Source of the DNA: Bugula neritina
Lineage: Eukaryota; Animalia; Bryozoa
Direction of reading: 5' to 3'
DNA length: 64,000 nt
Assembly (NCBI GenBank): GCA_964035545.1
Contig: OZ037766.1
Span: 31,610,773-31,674,772 of the forward strand
Part shown: positions 26,901 through 64,000 of the stretch, one piece after another
How positions within the stretch are numbered: position 1 is the stretch's first letter
Layout: every line of letters starts with the position of its first letter
Translations under genes and position numbers: made by a program
Notes under the pieces: generated by a model
The model's database searches: none
What the model was told of the DNA's origin: nothing
What the model saw: only the letters and a program-made list of their open reading frames with translations

Positions 26901-29736
26901 TACTCTTGTTTGCTCTCCTAATCACATATCTACTGCATGCAGATGTTAGCTTAGTACTTTTACTAAGTTACTAATATATGACAGCTATGACTATTTCTGT
27001 TTCCATTTCCATGACTATAGCTAAGACTAATGCTATCACCATTGCTAATACTTTTACTATGACTAATACTAAATTACTATTACTATGTCTAATACTACTC
27101 TAATTACTATTACTATCACAAAATTACAATTACTATACTAATTAAATTACTATTATTATGACTACTACTACCTCACTATCACTGTGGCTGTAACTATCAC
27201 TACTACTACTACTATCAATGTGACTTGCATGTATCAACAGTGATGACCAGAGTTAGACCAGTGTGTTGACATAAAGCATCCATATTACTATCTTTCACAG
27301 AGAACTGCTACAACATAAACTCTTTTGACCTGATAAATTATATTTTCAGTCTATGGTTATGTTACTAACATTAAAATGCCTCCATCTAGTAGCCAAGTTA
27401 ATTTGCATGAGTTATGTGGCATAGACCTATGACCAGTGCCTGGCTGACCCCACATACATTCTTTCTTAAATATGCAGACCACAAACTATTTCTAGAGTTC
27501 AATGGAATAGCATAGTAGTTTTATTTACAAACATAGAAATAACTTTCTTCTTCAGTTTTAACATCCATGCTTCAAAGGGATGGCATTATTTCATCATCCT
27601 GGTTTGAAAGTGGGATATTTCTAAATGCTAAAACATGTGGCTGCAACCCTATTATAAAAAATCATTTTATAAAAAATAGTTTAAATGATTATTTTTATAA
27701 AAAGTAGGATAAAATTCATTTCACAGCCCTATTAAATGGGATATATGCAATAGCGTAGCACTATTCTACAAACAATCTATCTATATTTGTGAGCTGCTAC
27801 ACCCCCCCCCCCATCCCCCCCCTCCGTCTAACTTTTAGGTTACTAGCAGTCAGGTTTCAATAGCTCAAGGTCTTTCATTTTCTCCATAATTAATTTTGGT
27901 TTGGGACTAAGGTTAAAGATTTAACTTCCTTCCTTGTAGAACACAGGCTTGTTGAGACTATTCATTACTCCACCCTCCTCAATAGTTATGGGCGTAAATC
28001 AAGTATATGTGTTTCAGTGAAAAGCATTTCAGAACGTCACTTATTGAAATAGATATCAGCAAATATCAAAATACTAGGAATGTTTATCTTGACATACAAT
28101 CACAATAAACTAAAGTGTCAATTGTTGAATTTTAGTAATTCTACCCTTACAGTAAAAGGAACAAGATACTTTCACTTGTCTGGTACCAGAGTTGCTGCAA
28201 CATCTGGCTTTTCTATAGGCTAAGTTCTTGTCATGTTGTACCTAATTATAGAGGCCCTGAGAGCTACCTCATACAATGGACCACAGCATGAATTTTGTAG
28301 AAACCCGTCTAGTTGAAATGTTTCCCCTAAAGTAGTCACATATATTTTAGAGAGAGGCATAGAATATTTTGCATATGAGAGCTGAGATAAACAAAAAACT
28401 AACATCATACCATGTGCAAAGTTTTTATTGCTGTTATCTCTACCTAAAGAAAGGCAGTCCTTACTTTTTGTGATGGTCACAGCTGTAAACAAAAATATTT
28501 TTTGTTGGACTACTAGTGGTTTACGAGAATCTTCCTAATACACATCCATTTGCATGAGAATATAACACTTGACATTTGTTAAATAATATTATGTTACCTC
28601 ATTATTTGAATTCTTTTCTAAGACAATTCTATATAAATGTATAATTATGTTTAAATATAAACTATAGAAATTCTACAAAATAATTTCAATGAAATTTCTA
28701 TTGTAATTTTCTCATCAAATAACACATGATTTAAAAACAATAAACTAGTAATCCTATATGAGCGTTGACTTGTTGTGTAGCTGTTGGTGGTTTGCATAGG
28801 ATCCAGAGGCCAGTACAGACCTAAACTCGAGGGATAACGATCCGATGCCCAGATACACTTATGACAATGAGAACAGACATGGAACGAGGTGTGCAGGAGA
28901 AGTAGCAGCTGAGGCTAACAATACAGCATGCTCTATGGGGGTGGCCTATGACGCTTCTATCGGAGGTAAGAATTTGTGGTTATAGTTTCTCAGGGTGATG
29001 TGAGAGAACTAGAGCCATATCATTAAAACCAGGGCTCTCCAAGAGGACGCCCTTCATCAAAACAAAGACAATTTTGGTATTAAGCTAATCTAACTCAAGA
29101 AACAAATCTCTCCAATTTGGTCCCAATATCTTTTGCTGCTCAAGTTTAAATTAATTTATATACTAATATAATATAAATGGATAACCCCAGTTTCTACCTT
29201 GTATCTGCATGAAGTTAGTTTTATGCCAGGTGTAAGGATGCTAGATGGGATTGTAACTGATTCTGTGGAAGCTAGGGCTTTGAGCTTCAACAGAGACTAC
29301 ATTGATGTGTACGTCTCTAGCTGGGGTCCTAGCGATTCAGGGAGGATTGTGGAGAGACCCGCCCGTCAAGCAGCTACAGCTATAAAGGAAGGTGTAGAAT
29401 TGGTAAGCTGCATGTAGTTGTATCATTTTATTAGGCCTGGTTTGGATGAGTAAGTGTCAGTCTACTATTATGTATACGGACTATTCTCTTTGTTAATCCA
29501 GTCAGCTGAGTTAGAGTGAAACTGGGTCTTATGGATAATTGGAATCACAACACCTAGTTACTTGTCAGTATAAGCTACACTCATGAGAACTGCTAAGTTT
29601 AGTTTAAAGAAGGTAGTTTCTGCCTAATAAACTATCAAAACTTCCAATAGCTTACATTGAATTCAAAACCTAAATTCTTCATCAGTAGGCAGTATGCATG
29701 CAATATATATATATACAGTATATATATATATATATG

Positions 29737-29801
<65 letters not shown>

Positions 29802-32800
29802 GCGTATCGATTGTTCCAGGGTAGAGATGGCAAAGGCAGCATCTTTGTGTGGGCATCTGGAAATGGTGGGAGAGATGATGACTCCTGTTCCTGTGATGGC
29901 TACACTAGCAGCATGTACACGCTGTCAGTTAGTGGAGTTACGGAAGGTAACTTACCCCCCTGGTATCAGGAGCAATGCGCATCTACCTTAGCTTCTACTT
30001 ACAGTAGCGGGTCTTCCCAAGACAGAAAGGTAAATTAATTTTAGTATCAACATGGCCGCTAATTAAAATGTGAAATTTTTCGTAAAAAAATTTGAAAAAA
30101 AAATTAATTTTTACTTTTTATTGCCCGAGTGCCAGTTAGTAGTAAGCATGATTTCTTTATCGCTAATAACTCTGCGAGAAAAAAGTTTCTATTGGCAGTT
30201 AAAAAAGAGCGGATAATTTTAAGTTTCCCTGTTTATGACTCAATCATGTTTTACTAGATTGTGACCACTGATCTGCGACATTCCTGCACCATGTATCACA
30301 CGGGGACGTCAGCAGCAGCACCCTTAGCAGCAGGACTAATTGCTCTCATGCTAGAAGCCAAGTAATTAAATTGTGATATAGTATTCTAGTACATATTATA
30401 ATATTCAATTGATATTATTAAAAGAATAATGAATGTTTTCAATAGAGTTAATTGAATATTTTGCCCTAGCACCCTTAGTTTAGAGTGTTTATTAAAGAAG
30501 AACTTTAGAGTAGCTCACTACTCCTAAGTTATGATAGACAAATATTTGTATTTCAAACTGGAAAATCAGATGCAGAAATTATTGCTGATAATTCTATTCT
30601 TTTATTTGAAAGAGGCTAAATTAATGAAGCTTTTTTAAAAACACACTCAAGTTGTGTTTGCCATAAACAGATTCTCAAGAGTAATCTCTAAATTCTAACA
30701 ACTTGGTTGTTTTAGTCCCAACTTGAGCTGGCGGGACGTACAATATATAACAATGGCCGCTGCTAACCCACTTCCTCTATTATCTCAAGGTCAATTTAGA
30801 ACTAATGGAGTTGGAAGGAAATGTAAGTACGATTAACGAGAACCTGTGCCAGCCTGTTGATGGGCGACACATGTAATACTTTACTTTTCTATTAGTTTTG
30901 ATTAAAGTATGAGTTTTTATTCAGCTGATACTGGCTGGGCTGACATTATTATTAGTGATTTTCTGTGGTCAAGGTCAAGTGGAATTACTTGACCTTGAGG
31001 GTCACAATGCATAATATGTGTCCAGGCTTTTATGTGGTCAAAAATATAATGACCTGGGTGAGCGTACTTATCCACATTGACAAAACAGTGTACTCTCGCT
31101 GTAAGGATTGAATCACCAAAACCCACGATATAATGCAAAGAAAATTTATTCTAATTGAGCCTTTAGTTTTGGCAATTCTTCTTAAAATAACATTTTATAA
31201 CTAGTTAGCATCCATATAATATAGCCCAATGGTAATATAGTACAGTATAATATTTGCATAGAGCTATACGAGAGTCATAATATATGGTAATATAGTACAG
31301 TATAATATTTGTATAGAGCTATACGATAGGCATAATAGACCAGTAGTCTTATATAGTTCTTGTTTCTTGCACATGTAGCAGTTTCTGGGTAGCAGGTAAT
31401 TTTGAATGCTGTTGTTTATAAATAATTACTACAAGATATTCTGTGAAGTTGGGCAACTTCAGCTAAAGACTGTTTTAAATCTAGACCATGAAATGAGTTT
31501 TGATTATTCTGTAACGTTTAGACAGTCACAAGTTTGGATACGGTCTGATGGATGGCGGGAAGATGGTAGACCTTGCTCTAAGTTGGAACGGTACTGCACC
31601 CCGCCTTAGACAAAACTTAGCGTCACCAGAGAACACTAGCATGTTAGTACTGACACATACTGTATACTGACACATACTATATACTGACACATACTGTATA
31701 CTGACACATACTGTATACTGACACATACTGTATACTGACACATACTGTATACTGACACATACTATATACTGACACATACTGTATACTGACACATACTGTA
31801 TACTGACACTTACTGTATACTGACACATACTGTATACTGACACACAGTATATACTGACACATACTGTATACTGACACATACTGTATACTGACACTTACTG
31901 TATACTGACACATACTGCATACTGACACACAGTACAGTGATGTGAAAAAGTTTAAGGACGCTTGCAGAAATTTCCATGTACCTTGTTTAATAGGCATTTT
32001 TTGTAAGTTCCTAAATTTTTCCCGCAAGTTCTATATATTAAAATGATCCTTAGAATGTGTTCTACAATTTCCACCAATTAATTCTTACCGTTGTAATGTT
32101 TTCCACCCATTTTCGGGCCAACTACACAAGCAGCTAGGGAAGCGCAACTCCTGTATTTTTATGTAACCAAAGTTTATCGCCTTTTCTTACCACAAAAAGC
32201 TAAATAGTGAAATTTGACTTTGTGCATGGCATCATGTTATCATAAAGTATGACTTCCCTTTATAATTTGAAATCTGTCATTTAGTTGTGAGCTTTTCTAT
32301 GGTGTCCAATTGGCTGCTTCGAATAGACAAAATGCGAGCTGTAAATCTTACTTCAGAAGCAAGGTTTGTAATAATTTTCTTGCATAAGGAAGGTTATTCA
32401 ATTAGGAAAATATCTGAAAAGGTTGGCAAAGCAAAGACAACTGTACATCAAATTATCAAGAAGTTCATGGAGACTGGCACTGTAGCAGATGAACCTGGAA
32501 GTGGACGACCAAAAATAAGCACACCGAGAGATTACAAGGTTCTCATTGGGATCAGCAAAAAGGATCGCCATAAAGCAAGTCCTGAGTTGGCAAGGAATGG
32601 TCAGAATCAACAAGAACACCAGCTTAGACATTTCGGATAAGGTAAGATTGCTAAGCCATAGCTTACATGGCCGCAAAGCAAGAAGAAGCCTCTACTAACC
32701 GAGAAGCAGCAAAAAAGCGTTTACGGTGGGCCAGGGAGCATGGTAGTTAGACAGCAAATGATTAGAAAAAAAAAGTAATTATTTCAGATGAATCCATATT

Positions 32801-37094: not shown

Positions 37095-38671
37095 AGCATA
37101 GAATCTTACAGGATCAGACAATGCTACTCTATATACGCTGCTAGACTTTTCGTAATGGTGTGATATGTTATGCTACCGCAGTTTAAATATCACAAGTATC
37201 CGCTACTCATTTCAGCTACTTGCTTGTATGTTGAAACATTAACATGTTATAAGCAACTGTATTTTGTCTGCTGTGATTGTTAGCCTTTTTATACTATATG
37301 TACAGCAATTTATTACAATTTGACAATGAATATACTCTATTTTATGCCTAAATTGTTGGCTTTAATGCAAAAGTGGTATGATAACTACAGGGTGACATTG
37401 AACATAATGTAAATTCTATAGAGTAGTAAAATATTTGTAAATGATAGAATTCAAGCATTGCTCAAATCTAAGCAAAAATTGCAGATGTGACACCATGTGA
37501 CACATGCAGACACCTGATATGACACCATGTGACACATGCAGACACCTGATTTATTAATTCACTCAACTTTCATCTACCTAGTGCTAAGTTAGTAAGCTAC
37601 CAGCTCATGATATGTATTTGGCTAAAGCTCATGTCAAAACCATCGCCTAATATTCACTACATTTTCATTGATCAAATTGAAGCTGCTTCAGGCTATATGA
37701 AATGGTAACCCAGTAGCTCCACTTAAAAAGACAACTCCAAAGAACCAGTCTTACAATTCTGCCAGCATAATAATAATAATAATATGTGTTGTTACTTGAT
37801 GTTAATAAACACAGCCAACATTATTTAAGTTTAAGTTAATGCTCCTAACAATTGCTTTCATTTCACTTACTCTGCCTTGATGCTTTGCTAAATTGAACTT
37901 GTTGGAATCACAGCTTATAGTGTGCCAATTTTGTAGATTCTAAAAACTATTGAAGCAATTGCATTTTAAACAATTATATGCAAAAATAATATTATTATGT
38001 TTAGGCTTAGATATTTGCAAAATAAAACTATCTATCAACTTATTTTACATATTTTAATGGCTTAGCTTAAAGAAGAATTATATGGTGTATCGAGATGCTT
38101 GTTAAATCTGAAATTATAGAGACCAAGATTTAGCAAAATAATTAAATTAGATAAGTTTTGACTTGAGTTGCACTTCAGTCTTTCATCAGGTCATAAGCTT
38201 ATAAATATTGTTCAAAATTCGTAACTGTTTGCTGCCACAGCTGCTGATTCTTGCCACCTTTTCATTTCACTATAATAAACAACTCAGTTTCGTAAGTGGA
38301 ATAAAGGCGAATGAATGTTAGCTCTTATGGGTTGTGCTTTCATTCAAATGAAATCATAAAATCCACAATTCAAACAATGGGAACGTCGGGAATAGGCTAT
38401 CATATTCACATATATTAAGTACACTACTTAGTAAGTTAGTTTTCCTGGTTTACAGCATTGTTACTTGCTATAACCTTTCTATTGATATAATACGAAGTAG
38501 CTCAACTCAATAGGTCTATACGTTTTATGTTAAACATGTATGCATACTGATAGTTAAGTGGCTGTAAGGAGCAAGTATATCATTCGACAGCTACACCAAT
38601 GACAGACAAGTGCGAAGATAATTCCTCCTCACAGGAACAGCTTCTCACTTGTCACATTGATTAGTAGCAGA

Positions 38672-41600
38672 ATGGCTTCGGGAGTGTCACATAATTCTGT
38701 AGATATTGAATTTAAGGATGATGAAGCTCTGTTGTCAAGTGAAGTTACTCAGGAAACCATAGTTGACCATCTCTGGTCCTCGTTGGTTCCAACATTAACG
38801 CTGCAGCATATGTGGAACATGGTAAGATTAAAGCTTCTCCCAGAGAGTCTAAAGCCGGACACATTGAGTGCCATGCTACTAACATCTGATGACCGTCTAT
38901 TAACTGTCCTCCATCTGGCTGTCATGGAGGACAATAAAGAAACGGTAAAATATCTTTGTAACCAATCATTACCTAACAATAAGCTACTGTTGTGTAAAGA
39001 TAAAAGTTCCAAAACGGCTCTGCATTACGCTTCAAGTAAGGAGGTAGCGCAGTTGCTTGTGGAATCAAACCATCCCTTAGATATGGAAAAATTTGTGTTG
39101 CATCCCAACAGTATTGGAAGAACTGCATTGCATGAAGCCATGGAGAGAAACAACATTGACGTAATCAAATATTTATGTAATCTGCCTTTTGCATGCAATA
39201 AATTGTTGATGATAAAAGATCAATTTGGTAAAACTGCATTGCATTGTGCTCAAACAAGAGAAGGTGTAAAACTGCTCCTTGAATCGGTTCACCGTAAGAG
39301 CCGAACAAGCTATTTATTATCAACCACGAGTAAAAAGGATACAGTCTTACATTTAGCAGCTTCAGCAGGGTTAACAGATTTGGTGGAGTTTTATTGCAGC
39401 GAAGAGATTCTGGAAGAACTCGTTACAGAAAATTTGAATGCAGAAAATGCCTGTGCACTAAACGGTGACTCACCAAAAATTCTGACTGCATGTATTGATA
39501 ATGAAAGTAAAACAACAGCAATTGGGAGAGAAATATTTTTGAACAAAATTTTACTTGCTACAAATGAGACTGATGCAACAGCATTACATTATGCAAGCAA
39601 TAAAACTATTGCCAGGCAGTTAATGGAAGCAGTGGAATACGATAAACAAAAGTCTTTTATACTGGCTAGAGATAACAATCACTCAACTGCACTGCACTAT
39701 GCAGTTATGGGTAACCAAGCAGATGTTGTGGAGTATTTATGCGCCTTTCCTCTGGATGACAATGAACTTGTGTTCAAACGAGATATAGACAATAGGACAG
39801 TCTTGCATATCGTGCTTAGTGAGCAAGTTGCCAAAATCATTATAAGTTCGGTGGGAGCTGACTCGTTGAAAGAGTTTTTGTTAACTGCTGACTCTGATGG
39901 GAACACCGTACTCCACTTCGCTGCCGTTATTGGCAGAATTGATGTAATAAAGTATCTTTGTAGCATAGAGTTACATAGCAATGAGGTGCTGTGGGCGCAG
40001 ACTCTGCGAGGTTACACATTCTTACATATTGCTTACTCTGGAGAAGTAGTCAACGCTGTGTTTACCACAAAGGCATCAGGCTGGATAAAACAGATCTCTG
40101 CTATTGAGGACAATGATGGTAACACTGCAATTCTATCGCTGGTTATCTTTGGACGGTTTGAAGCCCTGGCTGCATTACTTGAAAATTTACAAGAGCTTTA
40201 TCATCCTAAAACTTTTGCTATTCTGATGAGGAAACAAAACAAGTATAGACAAAATGTGCTACATCTGGCTGCCCTCTCCCTAGTTCTAGACGAACTGTAT
40301 GATGTGTTACAAGATTACCTGCCTCATATGGATGTCACGGAAATGATGGGTCCCGATGTCTATGGAAACACACCAATTCATTATGTTGCAGCCAAGTATC
40401 ACACTCAAGTGTTCGCTGACTTTATGCTACACCTGCCGCTGTCTGCCAGACGCTTGACAGCTAATGCGACAAATATACAACTAACAAACTGCAGAATTCT
40501 GGTAGCTAAGGAGCTTTTTGAAGAGACATACTATATACAAAAAGTGCTCTGCGCCAACAACACGCCTTCATTAGCTTCCATGTTTCCAAAATTGCAGTTT
40601 TATTTTTCATCCAGAGTAAGAAATTTTGAACAAAAATTAGCTAATCCTGACAAATACTTCAGTTATGATGAAAAGATGTTCAAGGTACTAAAGTATTCTT
40701 TAAATGAGTATTCCCTGTTAGATACTACCTACAGGTTATCTTCTACCTTCACAAGTTCACATGTCTCTCAGCTGCAAGCAGACCAAACCCTTTCAGATGT
40801 AAGTTTTGTCCCAGAAGCAACAAATTTGCAGTTAATGTACCTCTATATATAATTTTCATGAGTAATAATTTAAAGAAGGAAATAGCTAACATATAGAAAT
40901 AAAGAGCTTACATACTACACTTTAGTAACATGTCATTGTGATTTGCAATATATGTAGGAATATTTATTACTTTAAAATTTTGATGCTACTATCCTCATGA
41001 ACTTGTCTCATAATTAGTTTTCTAACTGCAAAAATAAAATAAATTAATTTTCTTTTAAAACATTGTTGAATTGCTCTTTCCGATCTAATATAAGTTTATA
41101 ATAATAACTTCAAGCAGCTAATCTAAGTTAAACTTGTAGACAAACTCTGCTACAAATGACTGCTTGTCCATCATCATAGACTGTGCAGATGTAGCTGACC
41201 CACAAAGGACTGTACAGGAAGCACTTAACAACATGGATGAAGAGATGTACAATGGCAAACCTAAGGTACTCAAGAATGATAGCCGGACCATATAGGACTA
41301 AATTACTAAGCTAGTTCCCAGCATTTACCCTCATACTATCAACAGCTGATTGCTGTATTTTGATAAATATTGTATTGTGTGATAACACAAAACCTAATCG
41401 GTGAGCTGAGGGGCAGCCAGTCAGCCTGTGAACAGGTTTTCTACAATATGCAAGTGTTCAATTTTCTACCTCAATGCCCTTTAATTTGGCTGGTAATAAT
41501 AGAAATATTTTGATGTGCCTAATCAGTAGCCACTGTGACATATATCCAACTGTCTTACTAAAACCTCTGGGTTTTCCAACATAATACAATGATTGCATAT

Positions 41601-44600
41601 GTCAAGATCTGTGTTTTATTCACTTTTAAACTTGTACACTCTAAAGATATATTATAGCTTTGCACAGAAAAATGAAAATGAGCTTTCAACTGCTTCCTAT
41701 AAATTTAAAATGTTATCTAAGTATCTGGAATTCTCAGGTTAGGTGGTAGTGAAGTTTTGTTTGACAACTTAACTTATGTATTTCTTAGTAATTGCGAGAT
41801 GGCCATCTAAAGCTGGCAGGCATGTGGTGACAACAATGTGGCGGTAGTAATTTTTTGGTAACAATGTGGTGGTAACAATGTGGTGGTAACAATGTGGTGG
41901 TAACTATGTGGTGGTAACTATGTGCTGGTAACAATGTGGTGGCGGCTATGTGGTGGTAACAATGTGGTGGTAACAATGTGGTGGTAACAATGTGGTGGTA
42001 ACAATGTGGTGGTAACTATAATATGATGGTAGTTAGTGGTAGCGATATAGTGACATTGCAATGATTTTTCAACTAAAAACAATTTTTCCTAAACTGAACA
42101 CATAAAGCAGCTTGTTTACTTACCTTAGTATTAAGTTCTATCACAGACTATATACCTTTCTGCAGATAGCAGTTGTGCAGTGTTTAGCAGCAGCAAGCCC
42201 TCTAACTCTCATACCTCCGGGTCCAGATTTTCTCATCCTCACTGTGAAATACTCCACACTAAACTACAAGAGGTTTGAAGTGTCTTATTACATTTATTTA
42301 CTATATTACCAAATTTCTAGCTGATTTCTAGTTTTGTTGAACACATTGTAATATTTTTTCATCCTAATTTTTGCCTCCTATAATGTCTATGAAGCAACAG
42401 AAAAACATATCTATAAAGCTCTGTAATTCAACAAAAGCTCAACTATTTCTGTTTTGTCAATGTACAAAGCTGTTTATGCTTTTGCAATGCATATTTTGAA
42501 ATATATAACTCAACTTTTTACATAGTCTGATACTACATCATAGCTTACATGTTAAAGGTTAGCTTTTTTTTTAAAAGTCAAATAACGCAAAATGCTGACT
42601 TCAAAAGCAAAGACCAGAAGAACTATAATTTAGAATATAAAATTATTGGCTATATCTGGTTATGCATTATTATATTTGTATTGTTATGAATTATTATATG
42701 TATAATGTTATGAATTATTATAATACTGACTTATTTCTAAATAGAGAAAGTCTGCCAGACATTAGGAGTTGTGTATCGATACAGTGGTTGATCAATGAAC
42801 TTACCAAAGATGGAAATGTAGAAACAGTTTCTGTAAACTCTACATTAAACAAGAAAGTTATCAAAGACTATGAAAAGCTAGCAAGAATGCAGGAAAACAA
42901 GGGACAAGTGAAGGAAGCTGTACTGAAAGAAGCTGAGATTCATCAACCTGCTTTGGGTGGTTGTGACGATTACAGCTCATTTAGTGCTAAGAATTCAGCA
43001 AACTTCCAACATCATGTTCAGAATTACCTGCTAATTACTGGAGAGAGAAGGGGAAGAGCTCTGATAATCTGCAACAATGTTCAGCTCACTGCCAATTCTA
43101 CCAAACCAGACAGGACCATATCCTCACTTCGCCAGGAAACTCTGCAAACTGCTTTTAAAGTCTTGGGTGAACATTTCAGACTGCAAGTAAGTTGAATATT
43201 TTGTTGACAAAATTATATATGCAAACTGTTTGTGTAGCACAACTTTCTATTTGGCTTTTGTTGTCATGTGACTTCGACTCTCCACCCCCTTTTTACAAAT
43301 GCGATATGATCTGAAATTGTCCCTACCTCATGATGATGGAATAAGTACTATCAAGTGTTAGCAATACTAGTTTGTATCTATTAATTTAGGTGATTTAAAA
43401 AGTCCTTGGTGCGAGTTTTAAGAATAAATTTAGACCCTATATCAACAAATTTAATCTTTTAGCCTTGCTACGCTAGAATAATTATAGGCTATAGAGCAAT
43501 GTAAGGATGCCAAGGATGCAAGCTATACAAAACCTCAATTTCATCGGCTAAAATTCGAAACGTCTCAACAAATAAGCTGCTAAAATCGAATACCAATGCC
43601 TGGTTTGAATGTTTAATAATTTCACAGGTGGTGATAGAGCAAGATTTGTCGGCAAGTGAAATGTTGAATTCTATTTCATCATTCTCAAAAGAGGATGGAC
43701 ACGGGACAATAGCTGCATTAGCCATCTTTTCTCACGGCACTAATCGGATGATTGCTGGACATGATGGTAGTTCCTCATGCCACGTACAGGAAGTGGTTGA
43801 TCTCTTCAACTCGGGAAATGTTCGTCATATTCCAAAGGTCAAGTCCAGTTACTCTTTTCATCGTTCATTATTGTTTCTAATTATTTACATTGGCACAGTC
43901 AATGCACAACAAACTTGCATTTTGTACCCTATTAGTCTATTAGACAGTGAACCTGGCTATTAGTCCAGTACGACTGTAAACTTGGCTATTAGTCTAGTAC
44001 GACAGTAAACCTGATTTTTCAGAGTATAAACTAATTTAACAACAAAGAAAGTGATAATAAAATTGCTGTGAGAATAACATGCAAAATTTCACAATTTTCT
44101 GTAACTGTGTTTGCAGTTGATCTTCATATCATGCTGTCGAGGGGATTTACCAGCCAAGTACAGTAGGGCTCCAAGCAGCTTTGAATCAAGCGCTGAGTTC
44201 CCGTGGTCAGAAAATGAGATAGAGTTGCTATACAAGCCAACAAGAATACCTCTGTCTACAGAGGACAGGAACAGAGAGTGGAGTCGTCTTCCCTTCCCTC
44301 CCTTAGAAGTTCCGGTTGACTGCTACGTCTGCTTTACTACTTTACCTGATAGCAAGTTAGTCTCATTTTTTATTAAATTGCTTTGTCTGTATTTTCTCTC
44401 TATGTACATATCTGTATTTAAACAAAATGTAGTGCAATTTGAATTATATTGAAATGAAATAGATAAAAAGTTGCAACTTGTTTATTATTGACCAACAACC
44501 CACAATTCTGCTATAGTTTTATGACCATAACATATTAATTCAATGTGCGTGTATGTGTGTGCGTGCAAGGGTGTGTGTGGGCGTGCGAGTGTGCTTTAGT

Positions 44601-45102
44601 TCCTTTCACTACTCTAATGACATACTAGTAGCCATTTAATGAATGCAATTTACATGTCAAGTGGATTATAAAATTAACATTTATTTACCTTTCTAACTAC
44701 ATATTATATATGTTTTTCAATAATACACTAGATATTTTAATAAGTGGTATATCACAATGTTGCTCTATATGCAAATAGATTTTTGTAACAAGCTGCACAT
44801 TTTCTATTGTAGCCATTCTTTATTTTACATGCAGATCCAAGGCTGGCAAATTCTTTAAATACCTGTCTGAGCATCTCTCCCAACTTACGGCAATTTCTTA
44901 CAAAAATGGTGGCACAACTCCAACTAATGCCAACATATCAGTTGAGTTGACAGACCTGCTGACAGATACTGCCGGGATTCTGAGGGAGAAGTTTCAATCA
45001 AAACAATTTGCTAATTTGTGTTACACTCACAACAGACATAGTAAATGGCTACTCATTAATGTCTTTCCTGCCTCCAATGCAAAAGATTCACTACACCAAT
45101 AA
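38672..45102 (+). CDS. Ankyrin-repeat + degenerate caspase-like + caspase (peptidase C14) protein
   Basis: Exons 38672-40798 (~13 T-A/V-L-H ankyrin motifs), 41140-41265, 42166-42272, 42745-43186 (RGRALIICN), 43628-43837 (AIFSHG, His), 44117-44355 (LIFISCCRG, Cys; DCYVCFTT), 44835-45102 (GKFFKYL...ELTDLL). All junctions are phase-compatible GT-AG. Confidence 0.85.
41820..42020. repeat. ~14-bp tandem repeat (ggtaacaatgtggt)
   Basis: Directly visible in an intron. Confidence 0.85.
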
Positions 45103-45627
45103 TTTTGCAACAAGCAATTATATTACATTTTAATACTATTTTATTATGTGGGATCAATGCCTGGAGACATACTAAACATATTCTGTTCAGAAACCCCTTA
45201 AATAGTTATATTATATAATATTTTAAACATTAAATTATGCATGTGCAATTTTTTACTTTCTTATTTACGCTATCCTTCTGAAATTTATATATATGTTATA
45301 GTGTAGCCAAAATCTCTGCCTCAAATTGGTTTCCTCTTATTGTCTCACTCTTGGCATAGAAATTCTAGTCTTTTTAATGACAATCATCTCCCAGTATCAA
45401 ATACAAACAATAAAGATATTCATAGTGTATCTGAAAATACCATATCATGTATGAGTTTGATTATTTCCCATACCATTTTATCTGTAGACACCTAGTGTGC
45501 ATCTAATATTAAAAACAAAGTATTACAGTTATTTTCTATTATATTGAATAAGATATAACACCATAAGATAATAAACAATATTGAATTCCACTATATACTT
45601 TAGTTTAGTATAATCATCAGTATGATA

Positions 45628-47321
45628 CTACAATAACCCAAGTCGACGCTCCATTGCTGCATGGGGGTTTTGTCCTTTTTCTGAAAACTCCATGGGATCT
45701 GTAAAACAAAATTATCTTAAAAGCTTTGAGATAAAGGAGTATGTAACATAACTGTACCGTAACTGTACAGCGCTGTCTGGTGTAAAGGAATTTATAGCTG
45801 ATGCCAGTTTAGATTTAACGATAGAAGACTGAAATTTTATACTTTGGGTGTTTCAAAACACAGCACTGACTACTGAGTATTTGAGAAAATACATTGTTGC
45901 AGCGACACATAGGTAAGTATTGTAGGTTAGGTCAAGGTTAAATAGAGGTGAACAGTACCCAGTGCAGTCACCCGACACCATATTGAGCCACAATTGAACT
46001 TACTGTTGAAAACATCTTCTACAGAGATCAGTTCGTCTTTACCTGTCAGTGTATCTTCCATTAAATTAGATGTCTTTGTAGCCATGCAAGGCAATCGACC
46101 AGCCTACAGTATATAATACATATTCACTACATATACACTACAGTAGATACTACATAGTAATAGGTACATGTTACATATACACTACAGTAGACACTACATA
46201 GTAATAGGTACATAAACAATGCAAGCTACATACTTATTACACACATAATACACAAATCACAATAAGTTATGGCTTGCGTAATAACTGCATGGGATCACAG
46301 TTTGAGGTGACTAGTGAATAGCCATTAGTGTGAGGGAGCATAACTCTTAGGGATAAACTTGGGGCTAGTAAATTGGAACAGCCATGGGCACATCTACGAT
46401 TCAAAACTCATCAGGTCTAAAGTTTAAAATAACTCCGACAGTACTGTGTATAAGGAATTGTCTCCACCTTCGCTATAACATACTAACAGTCTGGTATAGA
46501 GCAACTAAACAAGCAACTTGTAGTTGCCATGACAACGCACTAACCTGGCGCACAGCAAATCTTTCCATTCCTATTTTCATTGGCATGTGTAGCCCTTGTG
46601 TGTTGCGAGACATCTGCATGTTCTTTCTATCTAGCTCCTTGTCCCACTGTTGTACAGAGAACAATATTAGTAACAACAAAACTAAACATTCCTATAGGAG
46701 AATGTTCAGCCGAAAGAACTGGTTAACTGGAATATTATCAGCATAGAGTCATGTATACATACGTTAGCTTCTCTGGATTGGAGGGGGTGGGATGACAGGT
46801 TACCCGCATCTTCCTGCTTGGAAACTAGTCTAAAACATTGACAATATGTGTAAAGGAAAAGCTACAAGTATAGGAAACAAAACTACTTACAAACAGAAAA
46901 GAATATTTGATTTATGAGCATAAACTAGAGTGTAATAGAAGAATAAGTTGAGAATGCAAAAATTACACTCCTGATTGATTGAACAAACAACAAAGAAGGG
47001 AATTGCGCAAAACACTGAAAATTCCCTTCTCTAATAATTATACAAGTAATATGATATAGAAACAGTGATGAAGCAACTATTCGGTATGACTAACTATGTT
47101 GAACAGTAAATAAAAAAATTTACTGCAAAGTCCTTGTTAAGTCATAATACAGTATTACCCTGTTTAGGTACAACTATCAATTCAGTATAACAGCAAGAGA
47201 AAATATAATGATATAAACTGTACCCTGTGTGCATAACAGGTGTGACATCAAACTCCCCTTTACACCTCTGAGAAGATATGGCAGTTGGAGTCATGTCTTG
47301 TAAGCATGGCAGTGAAGCCAT
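45628..47321 (-). CDS. POMP: Proteasome maturation protein (POMP/UMP1), ~145 aa
   Basis: Exons 47321-47224, 46829-46763 (SHPLQSRE), 46646-46545 (RNTQGLHMPMKIGMER), 46103-46004 (GRLPC...SNLMEDTLTGKDELISVEDVFN), 45698-45628 (PHAAMERRLGLL*). Phases are consistent and UMP1 family motifs are present. Confidence 0.92.
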
Positions 47322-55800: not shown

Positions 55801-58800
55801 TGCGTAGTTATCCTCTCCCAGTGGGTAACAATATGCATGTTGTTACATTAGTTTGGGAGAGCTCCTCATATTATATAATTGCACTGTTTACTTTTATATA
55901 ATAGCTGAATCAGCAATTTACATCAATTCAAGGCTATTGGTCTAGAGACCTCCTCACAAAACCTTCTGATTTTTCCTTTGTATACAGTAACTATAAGTGA
56001 AGTATTACACTTGAAACTGGTATTCTCCCGCAGGGTACACAGGATAGAGTGACAATACAAGGGCCAAAGATTCTCCCGAATGGTGCCGACGTCTCTGACA
56101 TCTTGACCTTGACCAACCTGCAGGTGTCCGACTCGGGTTCCTATCAGTGTAAATATCAACCTAACACTCAGATGGTGTACAGTGATTCCGCTTCAGTAGA
56201 GATCAGGGTTCTACCTGGCCCCTTCGTCAAGGTGGTGGTGACAGATGAGGAAAGTGAAGTGGAAGCATTGGCTGGGTCTTCCGTCACACTGATAGCACAT
56301 GTGGAGGCAATTCCTACTCCCACTGTGCAATGGCTGTTCAATGGCGAATCTGTCAGTGGAAACAGATTCATACCAGTGTTGGTAGTCATTTCACTTCACT
56401 AAACAATTATAAGTCGATTGTGGTTTCAGGTTTTGCATATCCAGTCTATTTTGAGACAACTTGACCCTGTAGAAGGAAAGCTCATACCTTTTTGCATCAG
56501 AATGTTTATAAATGTGTTTCCTATCCAGTATATGAGAAAACATTATTTAACTTCCTTACCCGGTTTTCATTGCTACTCGCCTACTAGCGTTACCAAAGAA
56601 CTGGAGTTGTCTTCTACTTTTTTGCTACACATAGTTTGTTCTGAAAATATAAAATTAAAAAAATATTTTGCAGCTCTACATATGCTAATTTCCTGGAGAA
56701 CTTTCAGGCGACAACTCATTTTTTAAATTTATAAATTTTTACTAGAAAATAAGCTGAAGTAGAAAAATTTAAAATATTTACATGTTGGTTCTGGCACTAG
56801 TAGATTTAGATCCCAAAGTCAGTTCACTGGTAGTAACTACAAGTATAAACATTCAGCAACTGTAGTTACAATAACAAGCTGTCAGCCAGCTGTATCTAAC
56901 TTTTAAGGGCTATTCATGCCCTGTGCAATTAGATTGAATTGTTATACATATATTCACGTACACAATGCCCTAAAGAAAATGTACTGCTGTATATTTTTAA
57001 AGCTTTAACTCTCTAGTTTTAGTAATTGAAGGGAACAGTATTGCATAAGCCTTGGACAAATTGATTTACAATAGTTGATTTTAGATAGAATTTAAATAGT
57101 AATTTTTGATATTTGTTGATGATGAGTTTATTGTGTATCTACATGCCTGGAATTACATACCTATGAGTGACATAAATTTATGCAGTAAAACTTTGCGCTA
57201 CAAAGGGGTTATATTTAGTATCTTACAGGGTTAGTGTTAGTCTATTTATCTGCTGATTGGCTTGTCATTCTTTCTTACATGTCTGTCTGTATGTCTACAT
57301 TCTCTTTATAGATTTCGATCCACTGGAACCCCCTCAGATTACGAAGTATTTCTCACCATATCTGTCCTGTCTATAGAAGATGCCGGAACATACACACTGC
57401 TTGCCAAATACTCTGGCTCCATCTCTGATCAACAGGATATTCAACTAGTAGTTAACGGTATTTCAGTTTGTTCAACTTTCAGCTTTTACACAGTCTTGTA
57501 ATACTTGTATGTAAATATAATGTATGCTGTATTATGTATATGTAAATATAATGTATATTGTATGTATAGATGGAAATAATGTATATCATAGTATGTACAT
57601 ATAAATGTATCACAGTGATTTTAAGTTTTAATGATTTATTACACATTATCTTTCCTCCAACCTGTTGAGGCCAGCAATCTTAAACCATAGCCTTGATTCT
57701 GATACTCATGTATGACGGGTTGTGTTACAGTCCCCCCTCAAATCATGGTGAGTTATGTGTACGAGTCAGAGACTGTATCAGTGATGAGTAATCCCCACAC
57801 AGCCTTCTTTCAACTCTCCAAGGAGGTGGAGCTAGATTGTACTGTCACAGAAGGGTTTCCCGGCCCTCAACTGTCCTGGATGTGGCAGCCATGTGACAAC
57901 ACAAAACCTGACTGCATAGTTGATGAGGCAGCGTGGCAGACCCTTCCCACCACACTCAGGTAGGTTTTGTAAGACACATTCTCATTGGATAATGCATTTC
58001 TTTGGGAGTTTTGAATGCAACAGTTACTTTTCTTGATTATAGAAATATGATAGTGACCGAATCATATCTAGAATAGAAAAGCTGCGTCACCTGACCGACT
58101 TTCAGGGGGTTGCCCCCACTACAGTGATGTACTATTATGGTCTAACTGAACATTTGTATACATTTAGATGTTTATGAAAAAAAATACAGCTGTCTTTTGC
58201 TGCTTCCAGTTTCAGTATGTCAGTAACATTTTAGAAAAGTTCAACATTAGGTTAAAAAGACTCTTTTCACCGGTGTAACTTGTTCAACAGTTTAATGAGT
58301 ATGAATATATGCTGTTTAAGATGCCTTTTTACAACACTCTGTCTTCAATGCAACACCTGTGGGAAATGTGGTAAGTCATCCATTTCGTGATGGCAGTTTT
58401 CATGACATATTTAGCAGAATATACTAATTGTGTTGCAGCCCTTCAACTACTACTTTGGACAACTCCCCGTACTTTACTAGCTCGAGTTCTAGTAGCCAGA
58501 GTCTCCTTATAAAAACTGAGAGGTCGGGCTGGTACCAATGTCTAGCTGAGAATGGAATTGACTCCCCTGCTATGTACAGGATATTTACTGTAGTTTCAGG
58601 TGTGTATTATAGTACAGGATATAGCGTCAGGTGTGTATTATAGTACAGGATATAGCGTCAGGTGTGTATTATAGTACAGGATATAGTTTCAGGTGTGTAT
58701 TATAGTACAGGATATAGTGTCAGGTGTGTATTATAGTACAGGATATAGTGTCAGGTGTGTATTATAGTACAGTATATAGTGTCAGGTGTGTATTATAGTA

Positions 58801-61800: not shown

Positions 61801-64000
61801 CATTTTCCTAACTTTAACCTGCCTCCAGGAAACCAGGATCCAACAGTGGCCTGACATTGTTATTTTGTTTCTAAGTTGAGTATATGTTGTGTAAAGGCTG
61901 CTCCATACGCTGTAGTACCATCTGTACCAGTTAGAAATGGAGTTGCTGTTCTAACACAGAGTTGTCTGCCCGCCAGATCCTGTCTCTTTCCAGCTTAGAA
62001 ACTCATGCTTTATATGTGTTGTTTTAGCCCCACACATTATTACTGCCTTCCAAAGAGATGATCAACCCCGACATCCCTCTGGACGAACAGACAGACGCTC
62101 TGCCGTATGACATTGGCTGGGAATTCCCTCTGGGTAACCTGAAGCTGGGCATGCTGCTGGGTCAGGGCGCATTTGGCCGAGTTCTAAAAGCTGAGGCTAT
62201 GAACATTGAGGAGGGGGTATCGAGTACCACCGTAGCAGTGAAAACTGTGCGAGGTGGGTTTTTAAATACAACTGGTTTCTTTCAAACTGATTGTGGACAA
62301 AAAGTTGTTGCTATTCTGTATGAAGGGTTTATATTGTGTCTATATTCTCTCTTCTTACAGATCACTCTGATATTGAACAAGTCAAGGCATTAATCAGTGA
62401 GCTGAAGATTCTCATACATATTGGTCAACATCTGAACATAGTAAACCTGTTAGGTGCCTGCACTAAGGATATCAGCAAAGGTGAGTGTACTAACTATATC
62501 AAAGTAAAGGTGGGTGAGCAATACCCCGACCAACTTGCATATCCTGTCACGTGTAGATTATGTCTATAGCATGTCTTCTTGTTTGCAGGTCATATATTGG
62601 TTATAGTAGAGTTTTGTCGCCACGGAAACCTTAGGTCTTATTTACTCAAACACAGAAGCACATACAATCCCAGCATGGATGTGACAGATGGTGAGAACAC
62701 AGCCAGTGTCAAGCTGGGACATGTAGCTGTAGATATGACAGGTGGGTGAACGTATGACACGCCAATACAGGTTCTAGCAGGTGCTTGTTGGTATCTCAAT
62801 GTTACTGAGTAATAATTACTATACTATACTATAATACATACTATACTACACTACACTATACTATATTATATACTACACTACTATATACTACACTATACTA
62901 CACTACACTATACTATACTTACTACACTATACTTACTATACTATAGTTACTATGCTGTAAGTACTATGCTGTAAGCACTATGCTGTAAGTACATAATGTA
63001 AGTACTATACTGTAAGTACATACTGTAAGTACTATACTGTAAGTACTATGCTGTAAGTACTATACTATACCTCAGGTGATGACGACTATCTAAACCCCGG
63101 TACTACTGACGACAAGCCTGTCTCCATGAGAGATCTACTCAGCTGGTGTTACCAGATAGCCCGGGGTATGGAGTACTTGGCCAGTATAGATGTGAGTCAA
63201 TCTGTCTACTCTTGTCGTCATGGTAACGCTCTACTTTGATCTCAATTTCTTATACATTATTTCACAGCTTCCACAACTCTAGACTATGTTAACTTAATCT
63301 CCAACTTCCGGATGTCAAACAGCCTGTTGACTTTCTGATGCCGAAAGCTGTGACCTCAACTGTCTCTATGTGATGCGTTACGTACTGTATGCTGTACATA
63401 GTGCAATCATCTATAAACTATAAACTATGTTGTAGTATATCCACAGAGATTTGGCTGCCAGAAACGTGCTCCTAGCTGATGACAATATTGTTAAGATCTG
63501 TGACTTTGGACTGGCTAAGGACATATACAAATATCAGGAGTACCAGAAGCAGACAGACGTGAGTAACTTGTTCATCAGCTCCTGTCTAACTGAAGAACAC
63601 TGGCTGTAATAGACTGATCGCTGTCCTTTATTATGTAGGGCTCACTACTCTACTCTACAAAGTAATAGACTGATTACTGTCCTTTATTATGTAGGGCTCA
63701 CTACTCTACTCTACAAAGTAATAATAGACTGATTGCTGCCCTTTATTATGTAGGGTCCACTACTCTACTCTACAGAGTAATAGACTGATTGCTGCCCTTT
63801 ATATGTAGGGTCTACTACTCTACTCTACAAAGTAATAATAGACTGATTGCTGCCCTTTATTATGTAGGGTCCACTACTCTACTCTACAGAGTAATAGACT
63901 GATTGCTGCCCTTTATATGTAGGGTCCACTACCGATAAAATGGATGGCACTAGAGTCTCTAACACACAAAGTGTTTAATGTAAGAACAGATGTGTGGGCT
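52892..64000 (+). CDS. VEGFR: VEGFR/PVR-type receptor tyrosine kinase (7 Ig domains, TM, split kinase), 3' end beyond window
   Basis: Signal peptide (52892-52922 joined to 53537-), seven Ig-like domains 53.6-61.1 kb (D4 lacks Cys, D5 has WMWQPC), [22 protein letters not shown] at about 61.22-61.29 kb. Kinase motifs [47 protein letters not shown], short insert, [40 protein letters not shown]. Confidence 0.92.
55024..55365. mobile_element. MITE with ~70-bp terminal inverted repeats
   Basis: cctagggccacactgtgcgtattttcgcatgc...aaaggtgtccactgta and its reverse complement at the right end. Flanks ttaa/ataa; superfamily uncertain. Confidence 0.85.
58593..59332. repeat. 31-bp minisatellite (tcaggtgtgtattatagtacaggatatagtg), ~24 copies, starting at an exon donor
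   Basis: Directly visible; fills almost the whole intron. Confidence 0.95.
60004..60326. repeat. ~20-bp repeat with ttgaca roughly every 10 bp
   Basis: ttgacataagttgacag(a/t)tc units. Confidence 0.85.
62818..63070. repeat. (ACTAT/ACTAC)n followed by 14-bp actatactgtaagt repeats
   Basis: Directly visible in a kinase-domain intron. Confidence 0.8.
63606..63932. repeat. ~55-bp tandem repeat x6 containing the acceptor of the GPLPIKW exon
   Basis: Unit taatagactgattgctgccctttat(t)atgtag|GGTCCACTAC...; the functional acceptor is the last copy (63922|63923). Confidence 0.9.

Follow-up and report, generated by a model that had tools for sequence, protein, structure and literature searches.

A gene of the bryozoan Bugula neritina encodes, in one chain, an array of ankyrin repeats, a caspase-derived unit that is predicted to be catalytically dead (unit 1) and a divergent caspase with an apparently intact catalytic dyad (unit 2). 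The gene is real, intact and selectively maintained, and it lies on the + strand at 38672-45102 of the window (the whole stretch of DNA analysed, 64,000 nucleotides), with seven exons and about 1,172 codons. We favour, as the probable account, an intact gene in which a truncated dead module would act in cis on the live caspase that follows it. Caspases are switched on by pairing, and the control of this pairing is poorly known outside a few model animals. A dead and a live caspase in one chain have so far been described only in corals, there without ankyrin repeats.

Gene structure and family

Exons of the window were searched singly, with database proteins of the orthologue and paralogues serving as stand-ins for the joined spliced protein, and were joined locally for frame checks, alignments, dN/dS and local profile tests. 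Each of the six introns is GT-AG, their phases are consistent, the single stop of the joined frame is terminal, and the exon borders are concordant with tblastn of four database models. The features are as follows.

Exon 1, 38672..40798, + strand: 709 codons starting at ATG, phase-0 end; from the open reading frame, its translation, Pfam and a GTAAGT donor at 40799
Exon 2, 41140..41265, + strand: 42 codons, phase 0 at both ends; TAG acceptor, GTACTC donor; unit 1 beta3-alpha3-GKPK
Exon 3, 42166..42272, + strand: 35 codons and 2 bases, phase-2 end; CAG acceptor, GTTTGA donor; unit 1 beta4-PPGPD-beta5
Exon 4, 42745..43186, + strand: 1 base and 147 codons, phase-0 end; one open frame from the last part of unit 1 through the linker into unit 2
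Exon 4, first part, 42745 to about 42885: unit 1 helix and last strand (VNSTLNK)
Exon 4, middle part, about 42885 to 43050: linker
Exon 4, last part, about 43050 to 43186: unit 2 beta1 (ALIICNN) and alpha1
Exon 5, 43628..43837, + strand: 70 codons, phase-0 end after IPK; Pfam Peptidase_C14; unit 2 beta2-alpha2-beta3-alpha3
Exon 6, 44117..44355, + strand: 79 codons and 2 bases, phase 2; unit 2 beta4, catalytic Cys, loop and beta5
Exon 7, 44835..45102, + strand: 1 base and 88 codons, then TAA at 45100-45102; unit 2 small-subunit helices and last strand

The borders of exon 2 coincide with the points at which tblastn with P0005, P0007 and P0017 stops, exon 3 is spliced in the same way in the annotated paralogue models P0007, P0017 and P0051, and exon 7 is supported by tblastn of P0005, P0007 and P0020 and conserved in the orthologue. 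The length of exon 4 varies between 396 and 675 bases among paralogues because the linker varies. The public models of these genes are all predictions and are mutually discordant; P0005 is without exon 3 and half of exon 4, the database model P0007 is without the start of unit 2, and the public annotation fragments these genes and names one paralogue CASP9 in GenBank, which is a mislabel.

The orthologous locus in a second B. neritina assembly (L047) is colinear, keeps all splice sites including the GTAAGT donor and has no stop, its exons being 92-95% identical (exon 3 95%) and its introns about 84%. Comparison with this orthologue gave dN/dS values of 0.22 for the ankyrin part, 0.24 for unit 1 and 0.28 for unit 2, which shows purifying selection on all three parts. 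At least 11 copies of the gene were verified in B. neritina, and candidate loci of the family number at least 19. The caspase repertoire of the genome is unusually large, and no catalogue of it turned up in a literature search; one intronless caspase (L001) is too divergent to be chained with the ordinary caspase genes.

The ankyrin array

A count by eye in the translated open reading frame at 38657-40852 gives 13 ankyrin repeats, which lie at about 38900-40480, in agreement with the figure of about 13 in the initial annotation. These tandem 33-residue repeats in exon 1 match Pfam Ank families with E values of 2e-42 to 2e-15 (Ank_2 2e-42, Ank 7e-33), and their number varies widely between copies, exon-1 frames ranging from 491 to 3,025 residues. 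The repeats are followed by a conserved helical cap at about 40480-40745, within which lies the most conserved motif of the family, ...LKVLKYSLNEYSLLD, and exon 1 ends in a short tail that is predicted to be disordered. Neither an N-terminal signal nor a death-fold domain could be recognised in the protein, a CARD or DED was recognised neither in it nor in upstream open reading frames of at least 55 residues within 5.6 kb, and it showed no sign of a TRADD-N, Death-like or STAND NTPase domain.

Unit 2, a predicted divergent caspase

Unit 2 begins in the second half of exon 4 and extends to exon 7. Its catalytic His lies in SHG (codon 43733-43735) and its catalytic Cys in SCCRG (codon 44135-44137), as had been read from the window at the outset; the His and the Cys-Arg-Gly are each kept in 11 of 11 paralogues, and both residues align to the caspase-2 dyad. 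Exon 5 alone scored 20.9 bits (E 3e-4) against Pfam Peptidase_C14, for which the cut-off is 21.4, and the database proteins scored above it (47.3 bits for the orthologue P0005 and 56.1 bits for the paralogue P0051:130-438), the match in unit 2 of the orthologue (P0005:200-498) covering profile positions 1-219 of 233. Against solved structures exon 5 matched CED-3 at E 9e-6, and unit 2 matched caspase-2 p18 at E 4.5e-11; phmmer fails on the small-subunit part, which has diverged too far. As far as its sequence allows it to be classed, unit 2 is a divergent caspase with an intact His/Cys dyad.

A loop of the intersubunit type, about 57 residues long, leads to the beta5 strand DCYVCF in exon 6. 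The first Arg of the S1 pocket is present in the window and is Lys in the orthologue, every copy has Ser or Cys in place of the Gln of QACRG (Ser in the window), and the loop bearing the second S1 Arg, read by eye, is shortened. Given the Ser in place of Gln and the shortened S1-arginine loop, cleavage after Asp by unit 2 is not assured.

Unit 1, a dead caspase-derived module

The strings on which the initial annotation based its reading of unit 1 are all there (DC...IIIDC, GKPK followed across an intron by IAVVQC, PPGPDFLILT, SIQWLINEL and STLNKK), and SHG and QACxG, which it had found missing, are absent from unit 1 in 11 of 11 paralogues. In the beta3 strand IIIDC (exon 2) Cys-Ala stands at the position of the caspase His-Gly, and in the beta4 strand IAVVQC (exon 3) the Q of QACRG is retained, Leu occupies the position of the catalytic Cys and R-G is absent; the PPGPD loop between beta4 and beta5 is invariant. 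None of the 11 unit-1 copies has a His at the SHG position, only L029 has a Cys at the catalytic position, and R-G follows that position in none. Short exon fragments were misplaced in the MAFFT alignments and were trimmed, and a few residues of the exon 2 fragments are still misplaced in the final one.

A profile built from unit 2 together with 14 ordinary caspases of the genome matched each of the 11 unit-1 cores in one register, alpha3-GKPK-beta4, and the match crosses the exon 2/3 junction; homology to caspases is detectable for this segment only. Scores were 8.4-19.6 bits (E 1e-4 to 4e-8 per comparison) with 8.8 as the best of 3,300 shuffles, and 9 of the 11 copies outscored every shuffle with this widened profile, whereas with a profile from unit 2 alone unit 1 was indistinguishable from shuffles, separation appearing only after the ordinary caspases were added. 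The gene structure points the same way: the phase-0 intron directly after PK, which the initial annotation had placed in both units (41265/42166 and 43837/44117), is confirmed and is absent from the 14 ordinary caspases, which supports a kinship of the two units. The phase-2 intron past the DFL/DCY strand is likewise found in both, 12-16 codons beyond the strand (42272/42745 and 44355/44835).

We used an AlphaFold model of the paralogue P0007:60-375 (pLDDT 75, 55 rows), whose protein is about 45-50% identical to that of the window, as a stand-in for unit 1; this model has a helical ankyrin-like part followed by two helices and four strands. In a Foldseek search of 350,542 chains the best match to this model was procaspase-8 (E 0.03, probability 0.92), followed by caspase-8, cFLIP-L and caspase-6, all weak, with caspases and cFLIP taking 9 of the best 10 rows; the caspase matches span 124-149 alignment columns at a target-normalised TM of 0.25-0.32, and none of the matches reached E 0.001. 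An ESM Atlas model of P0007 residues 150-372 is caspase-7-like (TM 0.60) and cFLIP-like (TM 0.58), and the language-model nearest neighbours of two paralogues are all caspases. VIA-align and the Atlas shape lists on the good model were uninformative on the sheet part, as they were filled by ankyrin repeats, and AlphaFold on unit 1 without the ankyrin cap (P0007:150-375) gave an unusable model (pLDDT 49).

Standard searches returned little from unit 1. Pfam gave no Peptidase_C14 there, phmmer against 1.84 billion representatives gave no caspase and only Bugula-like fragments and one chance match (P0036, a bacterial cadherin-repeat protein of 2,585 residues, which was rejected), the unit-1 profile against PDB sequences gave no caspase and only chance chemokine matches at E above 0.2, and local hhalign placed unit 1 and unit 2 in register over 31 columns without significance (P 0.05). 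Nevertheless, the profile match, the intron position, the Foldseek matches and the dyad missing from 11 copies together show that the module, as the initial annotation had proposed, is to be read as caspase-derived and, having lost its dyad, as catalytically dead.

Proposed mechanism and alternative readings

We propose that the ankyrin array would bind a partner or ligand and gather copies of the protein together, and that the dead module may act in cis on the live protease through the caspase pairing surface, the last strand and the neighbouring helix, either blocking this surface, with release upon a signal or cleavage, or providing the partner that the protease needs. The proposal is modelled on cFLIP-L, which works with procaspase-8 in trans, and on the inactive domain of coral caspase-X, which works in cis. 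As an extension that we consider tentative and, taken as a whole, rather doubtful, the family might be the sensor-proteases of a colonial animal, in which an ankyrin array of 13 to perhaps 90 repeats recognises a foreign or non-kin ligand and the half-caspase serves as a cFLIP-like gate, forming an immune or allorecognition death switch of an origin independent of coral caspase-X. Such a switch would work without a CARD, DED or NTPase adaptor; that the family has any role in immunity or allorecognition is pure conjecture.

The dead module could also be a spacer or docking piece with no regulatory role on its neighbour, used for instance in pairing in trans or in holding a substrate, with activation arising from induced proximity driven by the ankyrin array. 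Being truncated, unit 1 may not reproduce the caspase pairing surface, many family members reside together and would be available for pairing in trans, and the linker between the units is long and variable among paralogues. However, the conservation of unit 1 across the 11 copies compared is strongest in the last strand and in the helix before it, the elements that form the pairing surface in caspases, and the killing activity of coral caspase-X rose once its inactive domain was removed (PMC4715348). We consider the spacer or docking role unlikely.

More doubtful still is a complete six-stranded caspase fold in unit 1, with beta1-alpha1-beta2-alpha2 supplied by the end of exon 1, that would make a full pseudo-heterodimer with unit 2. 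The motif LKVLKYSLNEY is loosely like the caspase alpha1-beta2 motif, and in the ESM Atlas model, which is of low confidence (pLDDT 0.51), P0007 residues 156-362 align to a cFLIP-like and 184-372 to a caspase-7-like model over 186-187 residues each. In the AlphaFold model of P0007:60-375, however, the stretch concerned, equivalent to the cap, is helical (pLDDT 75-96) and extends an ankyrin-like stack to which ankyrin repeats align at Z about 10, a disordered stretch of about 40 residues separates this stack from the sheet, and all the profile matches lie outside the putative first third. Three details of the initial annotation have to be revised in consequence: EKMFKVLKYSLNEY, taken for caspase helix alpha1, corresponds to a confident helix (pLDDT about 90) of the ankyrin-like stack with disorder after it; the start of unit 1 at about 40650 falls within the same stack; and VNSTLNK, taken for the VN-x-x-V landmark, lies in and just after the last strand of the model and by eye fits caspase beta6 better (Q......S.L.K register). 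Of the caspase fold claimed for unit 1, the caspase origin and the weak structural likeness to caspases and cFLIP stand and the complete fold does not. In the model the F-x-x-L-x-F landmark lies inside the helical cap, which leaves unit 1 with what appear to be four strands, in the order beta3-alpha3-beta4-beta5-alpha-beta6, and without the N-terminal third of a caspase fold; the predicted incompleteness is provisional because the prediction is of a paralogue.

It is very improbable that the model fuses an ankyrin gene that ends near 40850 with an independent caspase gene downstream of it, even though the exon 1 frame stops at 40852, just 54 bases beyond the proposed donor, and GenBank splits some paralogues in this way (P0022 and an 81-residue caspase fragment). 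The junction 40798/41140 drawn by the initial annotation has its GTAAGT donor, retained in the orthologue, and its TAG acceptor; exons 2, 3 and the first part of exon 4, none of which has its own start, nevertheless keep their splice sites and evolve under purifying selection; and GenBank joins the ankyrin tail to caspase parts in P0007, P0017 and P0020. The single chain is upheld further by exon 1, which links the ankyrin repeats to the lead-in of unit 1, by the equivalent of exon 4, which is a single stop-free frame spanning both ends in at least six paralogues as in the window, and by ten paralogous loci with the same order of parts on one strand. That unit 1 is unrelated to caspases, its motifs being a chance likeness in some other alpha/beta module, would suit the empty family and sequence searches and the weak structural matches (best E 0.03), but we regard it as the least credible reading in view of the in-register profile match, the rare PK intron position common to both units, and the caspases and cFLIP that dominate the Foldseek rows and the language-model neighbours.

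Comparison with known systems

In having a long N-terminal protein-binding region before the caspase domain, the protein resembles the initiator caspases (caspase-2, caspase-9 and CED-3), and the large-subunit part of unit 2 is closest to caspase-2 p18, an ancestral effector caspase and CED-3; it differs from them in being without a CARD or DED and in the Ser that replaces the Gln of QACRG. Proteins that join a repeat array to an effector are known from immune and conflict systems, where they form single-lineage expansions (Kaur et al. 2021, PMC8195603). The Bugula family shares with these a superstructure-forming repeat (ankyrin) of variable number, a death-related effector (caspase) and expansion in one marine invertebrate lineage; TRADD-N, Death-like and STAND NTPase domains were looked for in it without success.

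The cFLIP-L/procaspase-8 heterodimer (PDB 3H11, 3H13) offers a dyad-less caspase paralogue that works by pairing with a live caspase, and the protease-like domain of cFLIP is among the best Foldseek matches to both the AlphaFold and the Atlas model of unit 1. cFLIP differs from the Bugula module in being a protein of its own, which carries two death effector domains as well as a complete caspase-like fold and acts in trans at a death-receptor complex; the Bugula module is truncated and shares a chain with the live caspase, and ankyrin repeats make up the N-terminal part.

The closest parallel in architecture is coral caspase-X (Acropora millepora AmCaspase Xa-Xd; Moya et al. 2016), in which an N-terminal caspase domain without His and Cys precedes an active one in a single chain (PMC4715348), so that the dead-plus-live arrangement is less new than the initial annotation supposed. 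The inactive coral domain restrains the active one in cells, its deletion raising killing activity; the two domains were modelled as a cFLIP/procaspase-8-like pair via their last strands, and the authors considered the type restricted to corals (PMC4715348). The inactive-then-active order is found in the Bugula protein as well, exon 4 bridging both units in one frame, and both cases are families expanded in a single lineage, a small one in the coral. Whereas caspase-X is drawn with two caspase domains only, both recognised as such, the Bugula protein has its 13 ankyrin repeats and a unit 1 that escapes Pfam and seems to be without the first third of the fold. As unit 1 has no sequence relatives outside Bugula among 1.84 billion representatives, the likeness is probably convergent, and we do not assign the protein to the caspase-X type. 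A second, apparently independent fusion of a dead caspase upstream of a live one would suggest that pseudo-partners in cis are recurrent rather than a coral oddity; the bryozoan case, tied to a large variable ankyrin array and multiplied into a family, offers in one chain of three parts a compact system for asking whether a partial caspase fold gates a protease.

Gene structure and orthologue

The window comes from C2, a chromosome-scale contig in a genome of 216 Mb. The seven exons of the gene were read directly from their splice sites and checked by script. The introns, all GT-AG, have phases 0, 0, 2, 0, 0 and 2 in order, and the spliced frame across these sequence-predicted junctions is 3,519 bases long with a terminal stop as its sole stop. 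The gene is matched by database proteins named as B. neritina, and its exon borders coincide with the tblastn break points of four database models.

Table. Exons of the gene and other coding features (window coordinates, strand, description)
2803-3567, -, neighbour-gene exon, copper type II monooxygenase C-terminal domain
29694-30038, +, neighbour-gene exon, subtilase
32287-32640, +, Sleeping Beauty-type (Tc1/mariner) transposase helix-turn-helix ORF (E 4.5e-8)
38672-40798, +, exon 1
41140-41265, +, exon 2
42166-42272, +, exon 3
42745-43186, +, exon 4
43628-43837, +, exon 5
44117-44355, +, exon 6
44835-45102, +, exon 7
56049-56402, +, neighbour-gene exon, immunoglobulin domains
62058-62393, +, neighbour-gene exon, tyrosine kinase

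The transposase ORF, about 6 kb upstream of the gene, is what remains of a transposon. Intron 2 holds a 14-base minisatellite (41822-42016; about 14 copies, 85% matches), which gives spurious repetitive ORFs on both strands.

Because the locus in the second B. neritina assembly (L047; GCA_010799875.2, VXIV02002214.1) is colinear with 38259-47000 of the window at a DNA identity of 90% that drops to 84% after the first stretch, and nothing but the gene itself in the genome of the window comes closer than 33% to exon 4, we regard it as an orthologue from a diverged lineage or strain and not a paralogue. All acceptors and donors are retained there, the frame has no interrupting stop and exon identity is 92-95%. 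Among the coding parts, the ankyrin region has a dN/dS of 0.22, unit 1 of 0.24, the linker of 0.23 and unit 2 of 0.28. This conservation argues against gene decay and also against the GenBank model P0005, which leaves out exon 3 together with the opening half of exon 4. Downstream of the gene, a 44-base tandem repeat is present in 2 copies in the window (46104-46213) and in roughly 20 in L047 (7645-8543).

Public annotation of B. neritina splits genes of this family (at L047 and L046; models P0005, P0022 and P0051). P0005 also lacks most of the ankyrin exon, P0022 breaks off within unit 1, with an 81-residue caspase fragment annotated separately after it, and P0051, named CASP9, begins inside unit 1 without its first half. 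Both units are complete in no database protein, the paralogue models P0007 and P0017 lacking the start and the end of unit 2, respectively. The window's exons were joined for local scripts; search and folding tools received single exons or database proteins.

A single chain with an ankyrin array and a caspase

The initial annotation had proposed a single chain, and this is supported by exon 4, a single open frame that runs from the end of unit 1 through a linker of about 55 residues into unit 2, of which it encodes the first strand and helix; it is one stop-free frame reaching both ends in at least six paralogues. The order of ankyrin exon, unit 1 exons and unit 2 exons on a single strand is kept at ten further loci. 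Exon 1 carries the ankyrin array (Pfam Ank_2, E 2e-42) and reaches as far as the unit 1 lead-in, and a recount in the translation gave the 13 repeats originally reported. No signal-like N-terminus was apparent in the protein by eye, and neither the protein nor the upstream ORFs of at least 55 residues yielded a CARD, DED or death domain.

Unit 2 is, by sequence comparison, a real, divergent caspase. Pfam Peptidase_C14 scored 47-56 bits on unit 2 of the orthologue and of one paralogue model, and in sequence it is nearest to the solved structures of caspase-2 p18 (E 4.5e-11), an ancestral effector caspase, CED-3 and caspase-1. The His of SHG and the Cys of C-R-G are found in 11/11 copies. The Gln of QACRG is replaced by Ser or Cys in all copies and the loop that normally holds the second S1 arginine is short; therefore, cleavage after Asp is not to be assumed.

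Unit 1 as a probable caspase derivative

Weighing all positive and negative results, we consider it very probable that exons 2 to 4a (4a being the first part of exon 4, the end of unit 1) are of caspase origin. Conventional searches gave little: Pfam had no match on unit 1 even at E 10, a unit 1 profile had none among PDB sequences, and phmmer of P0007 residues 120-375 against 1.84 billion representatives returned 36 proteins, no ordinary caspase among them and all but one being Bugula-like exon fragments. The exception, a bacterial cadherin-repeat protein, is a chance match. By hhalign, 11 unit 1 and 11 unit 2 sequences aligned over 31 columns in the expected register (P 0.05).

A caspase profile extended by 14 ordinary caspases of the same genome, each as a single-exon ORF, was then used to score the unit 1 cores (exons 2 to 4a) of the 11 copies. 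All 11 matched in one register covering helix alpha3, GKPK and strand beta4, at 8.4-19.6 bits (E 1e-4 to 4e-8 per single comparison), and nine exceeded the top score, 8.8 bits, of 3,300 composition-matched shuffles; since the copies are related, these matches count as one signal. The highest score belongs to the paralogue locus L029 (C4:20317000-20326000), the one copy whose unit 1 carries Cys in the catalytic position (IAVIRTC), without the His.

The profile match crosses the exon 2/3 junction, which is in phase 0 directly after PK, as in unit 2. Since GKPK and QACxG lie within a single exon in 14/14 ordinary caspases of this genome, we take this intron as a derived mark common to both units, favouring the internal duplication proposed earlier, that is, a common origin within the family. 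The split between the units is judged to be old, earlier than the 11 copies, because unit 1 retains G-K-P-K plus a Q that is lost from unit 2.

An AlphaFold model of P0007 residues 60-375 (55 family rows; pLDDT 74.9, pTM 0.52) was searched by Foldseek against the PDB, and 9 of the best 10 matches were caspases or cFLIP, including procaspase-8 (E 0.029, probability 0.92), caspase-8, the cFLIP-L protease-like domain and caspase-6; none reached E 0.001. In a low-confidence ESM Atlas model of P0007, the clusters nearest to residues 150-372 were caspase-7-like (TM 0.60) and cFLIP-like (TM 0.58), and language-model features of unit 1 from two paralogues had only caspases as nearest neighbours (0.86-0.88, a level the tool treats as a lead only).

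How much of the fold remains was read from this AlphaFold model of a paralogue about 45-50% identical. Its residues 1-145 (P0007 60-205) are helical, with pLDDT mostly 75-96, are matched by DARPins and align to ankyrin repeats (Z about 10, 85-90 residues, 2.2-3 A); about 40 disordered residues follow, and then elements that correspond in order to caspase ones.

Table. Unit 1 elements in the P0007 60-375 model (model residues)
191-196, strand, beta3
204-214, helix, alpha3
225-232, strand, beta4
247-254, strand, beta5
274-282, helix
287-294, strand, beta6

By this model unit 1 would lack beta1-alpha1-beta2-alpha2, and the motif originally read as caspase helix alpha1, the family's most conserved, falls inside the ankyrin-like part. 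The ESM Atlas model is partly at odds with it on the extent of the fold, and we regard a full caspase fold as improbable. The pseudocaspase unit of the initial annotation is real, though probably partial. An AlphaFold run without the cap, the conserved helical segment after the repeats, gave no good model, which is weak evidence that the cap may be part of unit 1's structural unit.

Family and range

A paralogue expansion is present, with all parts at 11 or more loci and the ankyrin exon with its cap at 19 or more, many clustered on C8 at 7.33-7.57 Mb and 8.69-8.71 Mb. Open frames of this exon run from 491 to 3,025 residues, and the copies seem to differ about six-fold in repeat number. A metagenome contig (L048; ENA ERZ27264356, k141_273719) carries an ankyrin exon with the family cap motif and stops ahead of where any unit 1 exon could appear; because no locus of the window's genome exceeds 43% identity to its cap, it probably comes from another species and the family probably extends beyond B. 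neritina. The caspase repertoire of the genome is very large, with at least 177 exon-level Peptidase_C14 matches over the cut-off, a lower bound from 150 of 300 candidates scored, many in tandem clusters.

Table. Family and caspase loci in the window's genome
C8:7338258-7574225 and C8:8695062-8707216, family clusters, ankyrin-exon frames 609 to 2,453 residues
C6:3072984, family member, ankyrin-exon frame 3,025 residues
C1:32.8-35.5 Mb, caspase matches (example region)
C6:2.5-6.3 Mb, caspase matches (example region)
C7:5.0-7.7 Mb, caspase matches (example region)

Proposed mechanism and comparison with known systems

The data show that one chain carries, after its ankyrin array, both a dead module derived from a caspase and a live caspase, and that all of these are under constraint. 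The dead module may act on the live protease of the same chain. Caspases pair through the last strand and the preceding helix, and conservation of unit 1 across paralogues is highest in KPKIAVIQ, PPGPDY and its last strand with VNSTLNK. The linker, about 45 to 140 residues across copies and in some with acidic or Ser/Pro-rich repeats, is flexible, and its length would allow unit 1 and unit 2 to fold back against one another.

In full-text searches of incomplete coverage, neither an account of an animal caspase preceded by an ankyrin array nor a survey of bryozoan caspases was found. The initial observation was largely right and its interpretation partly so, and the arrangement has a precedent in coral: caspase-X is an earlier known case of an inactive and an active caspase in one chain, its domain pair was modelled on cFLIP/procaspase-8, and deletion of its N-terminal inactive domain led to more cell killing (PMC4715348).
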